A DNA stretch of 64,000 bases from NCBI GenBank assembly GCA_002189035.1, contig CM007989.1, positions 434,001 through 498,000 of the forward strand, read 5' to 3'. The first letter of the stretch is position 1. The number at the start of each line of letters is the position of its first letter. Below the pieces are notes generated by a model that saw only the letters and a program-made list of their open reading frames with translations, was not told the DNA's origin and searched no databases. Shown here piece by piece: positions 23,994 through 25,464 of the stretch. Origin of the DNA: Utricularia gibba. Lineage: Eukaryota; Plantae; Magnoliophyta. The position numbers were made by a program, and so were the translations under genes.

Positions 23994-25464
23994 TTACTCT
24001 GTACTGTTTTCCATGACAACGTCTTGAACAGGCAAGTCGAATTTGTTTTCATCTCCACCCTCAAGGTTATCTGAGACATCACATGTAGATAAGCCGGTAG
24101 TGTTATCGGCACCAACGAGTTCAATCTCATTGCTTGTTCCTCTGCTGTCAAGGGCTCCAAGGTTACTGCTTTCACCGGCATCTGGAACGCCATTTTTCTC
24201 TGTAAATGTGACTGCATCGAAGTTATCTGTTTCATGACCTGAAGTAGACGCATCCAAAAGAACCTTTTTCTCGTCACTCAATTCCTCATGCCTGTGAACT
24301 TCTTCACGACTCTCACTTTCATTGTCAGACTCATTCTCCATCACTTCCTCGTTCATCTCTTCTCCTCTGTTTTGTTTTCTCTCCAGAAATTGCATTCTCC
24401 TTCTCAGATTTCCCAACTCACTCTCCATCAGGAACAATCTTTCCTTCAAAATCAAATTCTCCTCCTCCAAATGTGCAATATGGTTATCTTGATCATCAAC
24501 GCGATTTTCCAATACGGTATGATACTCCATGCTGGGAAGATTGTTCCTGTTTGGATTGTAGATCATTTCAAACCGACTCAAATCATGGTCCAACCTCCGC
24601 TCCAACTCGACATGCTCTTCGACATCAAGCTCACTGGAACCTCCTTCATCCTCCTCCTCATTTTCATCTCCGGGTGACCTCAACCTAATCAACCCCTTCA
24701 TCGATCCATATCCATCTACTCCCCATTCTTCCTTCGCCATATCCACCAAAACTTCTCGAGATGGGGAGAAAAAAGGAGAGGGTAAAATCGCAGGTGTCCC
24801 CGGAGAAGGAGATACCAGCGATGCTATACCCCACTTTTCTTCGCTCTGATTATAAAAGAAGTGGTATTTCTTGGAGCGTAAGGTGCAGATCTGCCGCTGC
24901 TGTTATCGTAAAAATCATTATGATTTCCCTTGTCCATGTTAACACCACCACTTTTGTTGAACCTCTTTTTTGGAAAAAACTTCCTCGTCTTCAATCGGTT
25001 TCGATGCTGCAATTCGTTTAAATTTGGGGGTTGATAGTTTGTAAAACTTGAAGAATTTCCCAAGCCACCAACTCCCATCATTTTACCACCTGAACCGACT
25101 AGTGCTGCTACGTTCTGCTGTTCAATTCTCCTCTTATCGTTCACGTTGCTACTACCAGCCGCTTTCTTGCCCTTCCAGTTACTCCTTGGACCCAACGGTT
25201 TCTCAAAACCAGGCACAACCCCAGGAATTGGTTTTGAGCAACGAAAGTGAGCCGGTGGCGGCCACATTCCATAGCCTACACGTGCAGGAAGCATCTGTAG
25301 ACGATGATAATAAACAAATCATGATTTAAAAAATACTGAAAAATTTTGACAAACATGAATACTATTACCTGTTGTTGAGATTGATTCATATTCATCAAAT
25401 TGTGGTTGTTCAAGTTCATCAATGGCGGCAGCGGCTGCTGCTGCTGTTGTTGTTGGTTCATCAT
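23994..25464 (-). CDS. PRL1-interacting factor A-like coiled-coil protein (HEXIM-like motif order); exon 25464-25369, then 25294-23994 with a 1 bp frameshift near 24829
   Basis: Q/N-rich N-terminus, APYAPRNTTSFIIRAKKSG, EEWGVDGYGSMKGLIRLR, ERRLDHDLSRFEMIY and coiled coil HLEEENLILKERL. Adding one G restores KSGGIASLVSPSPGTPAILPSPFFSPSREVL. Confidence 0.8.

Follow-up and report, generated by a model that had tools for sequence, protein, structure and literature searches.

HEXIM1 and HEXIM2 are subunits of the 7SK snRNP, a small nuclear ribonucleoprotein, and HEXIM is the animal switch-off protein of the elongation kinase P-TEFb. HEXIM1 has, in order, a basic region, a linker with the helix alphaL (171-194), the PYNT motif, an acidic region and a coiled coil; the PYNT motif, unmasked when RNA binds to the basic region, binds and inactivates Cdk9, and the coiled coil dimerises and binds cyclin T1 (PMC12901311). 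A segment of HEXIM with F267, Y271 and Y274 is required for inhibition of P-TEFb, and the basic region to which 7SK binds is bipartite and arginine-rich, with WKPYxxLTWEEK after it. In a study of the evolution of pausing, iterative HEXIM hidden Markov model (HMM) searches of EukProt and of the Arabidopsis, rice and maize proteomes gave HEXIM-like sequences from cryptophytes, glaucophytes, colponemids, Spironema, Malawimonas and Rigifila, and the origin of HEXIM was placed in the ancestor that animals share with their unicellular relatives (PMC11482795). HEXIM and the 7SK snRNP have so far been treated as an animal, or at most a holozoan, invention. We describe here a gene on the minus strand at 23994-25464 of a 64,000-nucleotide stretch of Utricularia gibba DNA (assembly GCA_002189035.1, contig CM007989.1, positions 434,001 to 498,000 of the forward strand), the whole of which we refer to as the window. 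The plant family to which the gene belongs is very probably an unrecognised branch of HEXIM, and plants may own an inhibitor of their P-TEFb-type kinase, CDKC-CYCT.

The plant family

A word search with the C-terminal piece of the protein gave 612 relatives, the best match being from Orobanche minor with 80% identity, and the named ones are called "PRLI-interacting factor A". A profile search of 1.84 billion representative proteins gave 237 matches at E<=1e-3, with Marchantia, the zygnematophyte Mesotaenium, Physcomitrium and Riccia among the matches listed. The family spans charophyte algae and bryophytes to angiosperms. In an alignment of 36 angiosperm members the core reads NWKGKK; Y.PP.L.EL...NR.K.RKF; AP.APRNTTSFIIRAKKSGGIASLVSP.P.TPA.LPTP..SPSRE; EEWGVDGYGSMKGLIRLRS; an acidic run; EEH.EVERRLDHDLSRFEMIY; and a coiled coil opening QD.HIAQLEEENL.LKERL. 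Three elements are invariant across the range of the family: P-x-A-P-x-N in the motif, YGSM, and the L...N with which the coiled coil starts. In a set of 99 representatives the P, A-P and N of the motif are invariant and S-F nearly so.

The family alignment has two size classes, a long one (about 420-490 residues, with a Q-rich N-terminus and a long acidic tail) and a short one (about 300-335 residues, with neither). Nyssa sinensis has two proteins of each class, and the window gene is of the long form. There is also a subfamily (P0239, P0231, P0236, P0238 and relatives, the P0239 cluster including a Physcomitrium patens protein) in which APRNTT is replaced by APYND or APFND, so that a Y or F stands there as in the PYNT motif of animals, and T becomes D. 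Some members carry misleading automatic names, with P0020, P0022, P0026 and P0120 annotated as "Large tegument protein like", "Liprin-alpha-2 like", "Protein distal antenna" and "midasin".

Similarity to HEXIM

About 136 proteins of the family were scanned with the Pfam HEXIM model (PF15313 / IPR024872), for which the gathering score is 29 bits. There were matches in 7 of the 36 angiosperm members, in 8 of 10 distant members and in 6 of 10 further divergent members, the last mostly AP[Y/F]N variants. At E<=1 the model matched 36 of the 99 representatives, which makes HEXIM the second commonest family after the generic coiled-coil model Csm1_N. Every match is in one register, with the short helix and the AP.N..SF motif falling on profile positions ~11-53, which are the HEXIM1 linker helix alphaL and 202-PYNTTQFLM-210. 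The best match, P0266, has E 2.2e-5 and 25.1 bits, with residues 37-121 on profile positions 16-100, and it is the only Pfam match of that protein; multiplied by the ~136 proteins scanned, its E-value is about 3e-3. P0266 is a secure member of the family, as it matches the plant profile with E 4e-19; it carries EWGVDSYGSMNGLI and LEQRIDH. The next best are P0163 (E 4e-4) and P0164 from Artemisia (E 4.6e-4), and the scores next after 25.1 bits are 21.0 and 20.9 bits.

The comparison was also made in the reverse direction, with the 43-residue stretch of the Pfam HEXIM consensus at positions 11-53 scored on HMMs of plant alignments and 20,000 composition-preserving shuffles of the same stretch as control. 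The consensus scored 23.8 bits on alignment A3 (best shuffle 11.5), 21.7 bits on A5 (best shuffle 10.5) and 10.7 bits on A2 (best shuffle 9.6), and none of the 20,000 shuffles reached the real score. PrAPrNttSFim of the plants is paired with PVAPYNTTQFLM. For the helix and the PYNT-type motif the likeness to HEXIM goes beyond chance, and the proposal in an earlier note on this DNA that APRNTTSFII is a motif of PYNT type is borne out by both the Pfam matches and the shuffle test. The second position of PYNT is variable in bona fide HEXIM proteins also, where it may be K, P or H.

A language-model feature search also gave HEXIM as the top named family, with 0.78 for a whole Nelumbo member and 0.76 for its C-terminal part (195-300) alone, both values being below the reliability level of the tool.

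The HEXIM-like proteins of protists share three collinear blocks with the plant family when compared by eye:

Kinase-binding motif: [M/H]P.APRNTTQF[LI] in protists, APRNTTSFII in the plant family
Block after the motif: VDGSMQGLI, LDLSMQGIL or EW..D..FGSMHGVL in protists, VDGYGSMKGLI in the plant family
Start of the coiled coil: KDAQIRQLTEENVQLKTKL, DSELAQLRTENTSLRMRLYFL and also QLTEENVQLKTKL (QLxEENxxLK type) in protists, QD.HIA.LEEENL.LKERLFLM in the plant family

R is common outside animals at the "Y" position of the motif. One of the colponemid HEXIM-like sequences is above the Pfam HEXIM cutoff, with 30.5 bits. Neither Chloroplastida nor Arabidopsis is represented in the HEXIM files of the pausing study, and no sequence of its supplementary files has YGSMKG or YGSMNG, the hallmark of the plants (PMC11482795). 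A metagenome scan for bridging protist genes, with a search pattern that demanded ...SF, gave plant and moss loci only.

Gene structure and expression

The gene runs from an ATG at 25464 to a stop at 23994-23996, with the following parts:

25465..25516, minus strand: 5' untranslated region (UTR) stretch of the ATG-containing exon, from RNA contigs
25369..25464, minus strand: first coding exon, 32 codons, Q/N-rich N-terminus (MMNQQQQQQQ...), from an RNA-contig junction; family members also have the Q-rich start
25295..25368, minus strand: 74-nt GT..AG intron, the joint 25294/25369 (CT..AC on the plus strand) being present in three RNA-like runs
23994..25294, minus strand: last coding exon, with the remainder of the 465-residue protein and the stop at 23994-23996, from the open reading frame (ORF) and homologs (best match E 6e-83)
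24829..24832, minus strand: G homopolymer lacking one base in the window sequence, which gives an apparent frameshift; one C is inserted in all four compared runs

For comparison we used Logan contigs over 23900-25600 from four public runs of Utricularia gibba, three of them RNA-like (from three studies) and one of DNA; all four are other than X1-X3, the runs flagged as possible source of the assembly. The 74-nt intron is skipped in the three RNA-like runs and retained in the DNA run X8, and the gene is thus transcribed and spliced. The RNA contigs depart from the window sequence at 25516 and take it up again near 25599, the loose contig ends in X4 and X10 behind 25516 reading AATCGAAATCGGAG..., which is the window sequence at ~25599; this indicates a second intron, in the 5' UTR, that starts at 25517.

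In the window sequence the long exon is split into two frames at the GGGG run 24829-24832. Frame A (25294-24827) ends ...APYAPRNTTSFIIRAKKSGV, its last residues being ...RAKKSGV with the stop at 24824, and frame B (24830-23997) opens GIASLVSPSPG.... This stop after ...KKSGV is what a pseudogene broken by a frameshift would have, and X1-X3 are outside the compared runs. However an extra C behind plus-strand position 24828, giving GGGGG on the coding strand, is present in 4 of 4 compared runs, DNA and RNA-like, from four studies, and this one base mends the frame to ...RAKKSGGIASLVSP..., including KKSGGIASL, which is exactly the family consensus. The transcript is moreover spliced, and both halves are strongly conserved, with 80% identity to the Orobanche protein and invariant motifs on either side of the break. 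A pseudogene is accordingly most improbable, and as the compared contigs carry the restored frame we reject it. The single frameshift that the earlier note had repaired is real in the window sequence and is absent from the four other runs of the organism; it looks like a miscall, in the homopolymer or in assembly, or else like an allele private to the window sequence, and is no property of the gene. The gene is almost certainly intact, expressed and spliced, with a product of 465 residues.

Runs of this organism differ elsewhere too: one of them lacks 3 nt at 24649, within the acidic stretch, two have 12 nt inserted behind 23915 in the 3' UTR, and there are several single-base differences.

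Layout of the protein

The protein of 465 residues is predicted to be largely disordered with a C-terminal coiled coil. In the AlphaFold2 prediction the protein is disordered apart from a short helix immediately ahead of the motif, another over EEHVEVERRLDHDLSRFEMIY and a long coiled-coil helix with pLDDT (model confidence) above 90; in the model of the C-terminal part there is a helix at 5-28, a break, and a helix at 32-95 at pLDDT 87. This layout agrees with the domain map of HEXIM1 (PMC12901311). All of the motif strings quoted in the earlier note are found in the translation of the minus strand of the window in the order it gave. The parts of the protein are:

25127..25180, minus strand: basic patch 1 (NWKGKK...KRR), with NWKGKK at 25163-25180; W-K-G nearly invariant in angiosperms
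24959..25021, minus strand: L.EL...NR.K.RKF segment, predicted short helix and basic patch 2, containing RNRLKTRKFFPKKRF; conserved, and helix 46-57 of the AlphaFold2 model
24848..24877, minus strand: PYNT-type motif APRNTTSFII; P, A-P and N invariant across streptophytes, HEXIM consensus vApyNttqFLm
24759..24830, minus strand: block rich in serine/threonine-proline (S/T-P) pairs (SPSPGTP..SPFFSPS), predicted disordered, from the family alignment and AlphaFold2
24675..24731, minus strand: EEWGVDGYGSMKGLIRLRS block, with YGSM invariant in the family alignments; protist HEXIM-like proteins have a related block
24615..24668, minus strand: acidic region DENEEEDEGGSSELDVEE, including EEEDEGGSS; an acidic stretch is conserved in the family
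24558..24614, minus strand: predicted helix alpha1 (HVELERRLDHDLSRFEMIY, containing RRLDHDLSRFEMIY) before the coiled coil; AlphaFold2 helix with pLDDT 83-89, no Pfam HEXIM match
24375..24515, minus strand: predicted long coiled-coil helix, pLDDT above 90, opening with invariant L-E-x-x-N-x-x-L (HLEEENLILKERL at 24435-24473)
23997..24362, minus strand: acidic C-terminal tail of the long paralog class, poorly conserved in the family alignment

Basic patch 1 may, judged by eye alone, correspond to the basic region or WKPY block of HEXIM. The L.EL...NR.K.RKF segment occupies the place of the HEXIM1 linker helix alphaL, and it is there that the Pfam HEXIM matches begin (profile positions ~11-20). 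The S/T-P block could hold sites for proline-directed phosphorylation. The acidic region resembles that of HEXIM in composition only, and it lies downstream of the motif as in HEXIM.

Proposed function and origin of the plant protein

The sequence comparisons make it highly likely that the family is the streptophyte branch of an ancient HEXIM or HEXIM-like family. Our best explanation of the locus as a whole, which we regard as probable on balance, is that of an intact and expressed gene of a plant HEXIM branch, with a product that would work in a HEXIM1-like mode. The order of elements is kept, from the basic patch and the short helix through the PYNT-type motif (APRNTTSF) and the acidic region to the helix and the coiled coil. 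We infer all of the binding and inhibition steps from the analogy to HEXIM1. As in HEXIM1, the protein would form a dimer and contact the cyclin (CYCT1) through its coiled coil, its APRNTTSF motif would sit on the kinase (CDKC;1/2) and shut it off, and intramolecular contacts of the basic and acidic regions would keep that motif hidden until the basic patch takes up a ligand, possibly RNA. Plants retain both CDKC and CYCT1. That the plant protein inhibits CDKC-CYCT is a serious possibility, though we hesitate to call it probable, and gating of the plant protein by RNA is doubtful. We also think it unlikely that plants, and the common ancestor of plants and animals, would have had the complete HEXIM-type sequestration of P-TEFb, with a small nuclear RNA in the role of 7SK and CDKC-CYCT reversibly inactivated.

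A number of results weigh against a plant HEXIM. No family member reaches the Pfam gathering score, the maximum among the ~136 scanned being 25.1 bits; the pieces of the window protein have no HEXIM match, and the N-terminal piece no Pfam match whatever. The earlier note had equated RRLDHDLSRFEMIY with FLQRDFSETYERY and the basic region with the 7SK-binding basic region of HEXIM1, and neither equation is supported: 0 of 10 C-terminal segments scanned alone with Pfam matched the C-terminal half of the HEXIM domain, in which the Y271 region lies, and nothing in the basic region matches the 7SK-binding arginine-rich motif in sequence. Profile methods do not demonstrate a likeness for the FLQRDFSETYERY-like stretch, and pairing by eye of the F267/Y271/Y274 segment (FsetYeevh) with DLSRFEMIY is ambiguous by one register. 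A regular-expression search of the fetched family proteins found no WKPY..WEE block, and also no NTTQ or NTTR. The coiled coil had been put forward as the cyclin T-binding region; by eye the family shares the LEEEN start with the human and protist proteins, but the cyclin-binding coiled coil of HEXIM1 itself was not matched. Three profile searches of the PDB to E<=10 brought up generic coiled coils alone (Csm1, STAT3, designed coils), without a HEXIM chain, the presence of HEXIM1 cyclin-binding-domain entries in that copy of the PDB being unchecked. Fold searches with the AlphaFold2 C-terminal model (Foldseek/PDB, ESM Atlas, VIA-align) gave nothing or unspecific long helices with Z about 7; fold comparison is uninformative for long helices, and structure is non-discriminating here. 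The language-model search gave no usable match for the N-terminal part alone, and its other scores, being under the reliability level, count only as a lead that names the same family. The block comparison with protists was made by eye and not from a computed alignment. The only interaction on record for the family is the binding to PRLI (PRL1) implied by its name, and we know of neither 7SK RNA nor LARP7 having been described in plants. The lack of a recognisable WKPYxxLTWEEK block, the extra plant residues after the motif and the undetectable cyclin-binding region, for which details are given in the final section, belong with these points.

Some of them are what one would expect if the family were truly homologous to HEXIM with a diverged function, kinase inhibition having been lost or never present. 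The protein would then be a dimeric disordered adaptor, for example for PRL1 and the MOS4-associated splicing complex or for another cyclin-dependent kinase (CDK), or a scaffold phosphorylated at its S/T-P sites. The missing WKPY..WEEK block, the plant-expanded S/T-P-rich insert, the undetectable equivalent of the Y271 region and the PRL1 interaction recorded in the family name all fit, and the last is reportedly a yeast two-hybrid result. Key residues are also missing in many non-holozoan HEXIM-like sequences (PMC11482795). However over about 500 million years of streptophytes conservation is highest in P, A-P, N and S-F of the PYNT-type motif and where the coiled coil begins, and these are the two elements that HEXIM1 uses on Cdk9 and cyclin T (PMC12901311). 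Plants also keep CDKC and CYCT1, and we consider such divergence rather unlikely. The more radical view is that there is no common ancestry and that a short linear motif and a charge pattern are alike by chance or convergence. All Pfam HEXIM matches are indeed under the curated cutoff, with the bulk of the score in a 12-residue motif, generic coiled-coil families (Csm1_N, Cnn_1N) have equal or better E-values, and neither the PDB nor the C-terminal half of the Pfam model gave a match. But the best E-value withstands correction for the number of proteins scanned, the reverse test is 12 bits above 20,000 shuffles, there are three collinear blocks and not one in common with the protist proteins, and a separate method, the language model, names HEXIM for the C-terminal part. 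We thus regard chance or convergence as improbable, and retain the plant HEXIM branch as the preferred interpretation.

With regard to novelty, the earlier note had stated that the family is only labelled PRL1-interacting factor A and that no characterised plant HEXIM is known to it, and we agree on both counts, the family being uncharacterised. We found no description of a plant HEXIM in the searchable literature (subscription journals and InterPro/PANTHER being outside its scope), where the family appears only as a quantitative trait locus or expression candidate, and there is none in the survey that covered Arabidopsis, rice and maize (PMC11482795). The literature on interactors of plant CDKC/CYCT yielded nothing usable. 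Plants are not known to have NELF. A conserved plant HEXIM homolog provides a named candidate family for the restraint of their P-TEFb-type kinase (CDKC-CYCT), with a short motif that can be mutated and with members in the tractable models Arabidopsis, Marchantia and Physcomitrium. It would also make the HEXIM module older, with an origin nearer to the last eukaryotic common ancestor, and an RNA-gated plant system, if true, would date 7SK-style control of elongation to before the split of plants and animals and not to the origin of Holozoa.

Neighbouring genes

On the plus strand at 22137-23657 of the window there is an intronless ORF of 506 residues. It encodes a DEAD-box helicase that carries a HIT zinc finger at its N-terminus (Pfam zf-HIT, DEAD and Helicase_C) and that we take to be DDX59-like. 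The ORF is convergent with the HEXIM-like gene, with 337 bp between the stop codons, and a single RNA-like contig covers both genes. On the other side, at 25995-27164 on the minus strand, is an ORF of 389 residues with Pfam FA_desaturase and DUF3474 matches, taken to be a FAD2-type fatty-acid desaturase. It begins ~500 bp upstream of the 5' end of the HEXIM-like gene, and the locus is thus very gene-dense. An Rfam scan of the whole 64-kb window found no 7SK-like RNA, the sole match at the gathering threshold being a tRNA-Gly (GCC) at 58691-58762 on the plus strand.

Comparison with known systems

The commonest Pfam match of the family is to the N-terminal coiled coil of Csm1 (PF18504), with which it shares heptads over about 55-65 residues. 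However the match is confined to the coiled coil, many other coiled-coil families give similar E-values, and the best score, 25.6 bits, is just short of the cutoff of 26.3. Csm1 ends in a globular domain, whereas the plant C-terminus is an unconserved acidic tail, and we reject membership of the Csm1/monopolin family. The known plant CDK inhibitors ICK/KRP and SIAMESE/SMR are small or disordered and block cyclin-CDK pairs by means of short motifs, but they have no sequence relation to the plant family, lack a coiled coil, and target the cell-cycle kinases CDKA/CDKB and not the transcriptional CDKC.

With metazoan HEXIM1 and HEXIM2 the plant proteins share the order of elements (basic patch, linker helix, [A]P-x-N-T-T-x-F-[LI]-[MI], acidic region, predicted helix and parallel coiled coil), the mostly disordered nature, and a coiled coil opening with L/M-E-[DE]-E-N-x-x-L. 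They differ in having no recognisable WKPYxxLTWEEK block, in R for Y in most plants (Y/F in mosses and some others) and S for Q before F, and in about 60 extra residues (S/T-P and YGSM blocks) that separate the motif from the acidic region. No similarity is detectable for the Y271 region or for the sequence of the cyclin-binding domain, the matches are under the Pfam cutoff, and there is no known 7SK partner.

The non-holozoan HEXIM-like proteins are known from their sequences, and the published set of 66, with Guillardia theta XP_005839073.1, Colponemidia Colp-10 P001344 and Cyanoptyche P000581 among them, holds no green-plant member (PMC11482795). Unlike the plant proteins they keep the canonical basic KRRxR-WKPYSxLTWEEK start and do not have the long S/T-P block. 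They are like the plant family in APRNTT(Q/S)F with R at the Y position, in D-x-SM-x-G-L-[IL] after the motif, in the acidic stretch and in a coiled coil that opens (K/Q)D..I..L.EEN..LK (PMC11482795).

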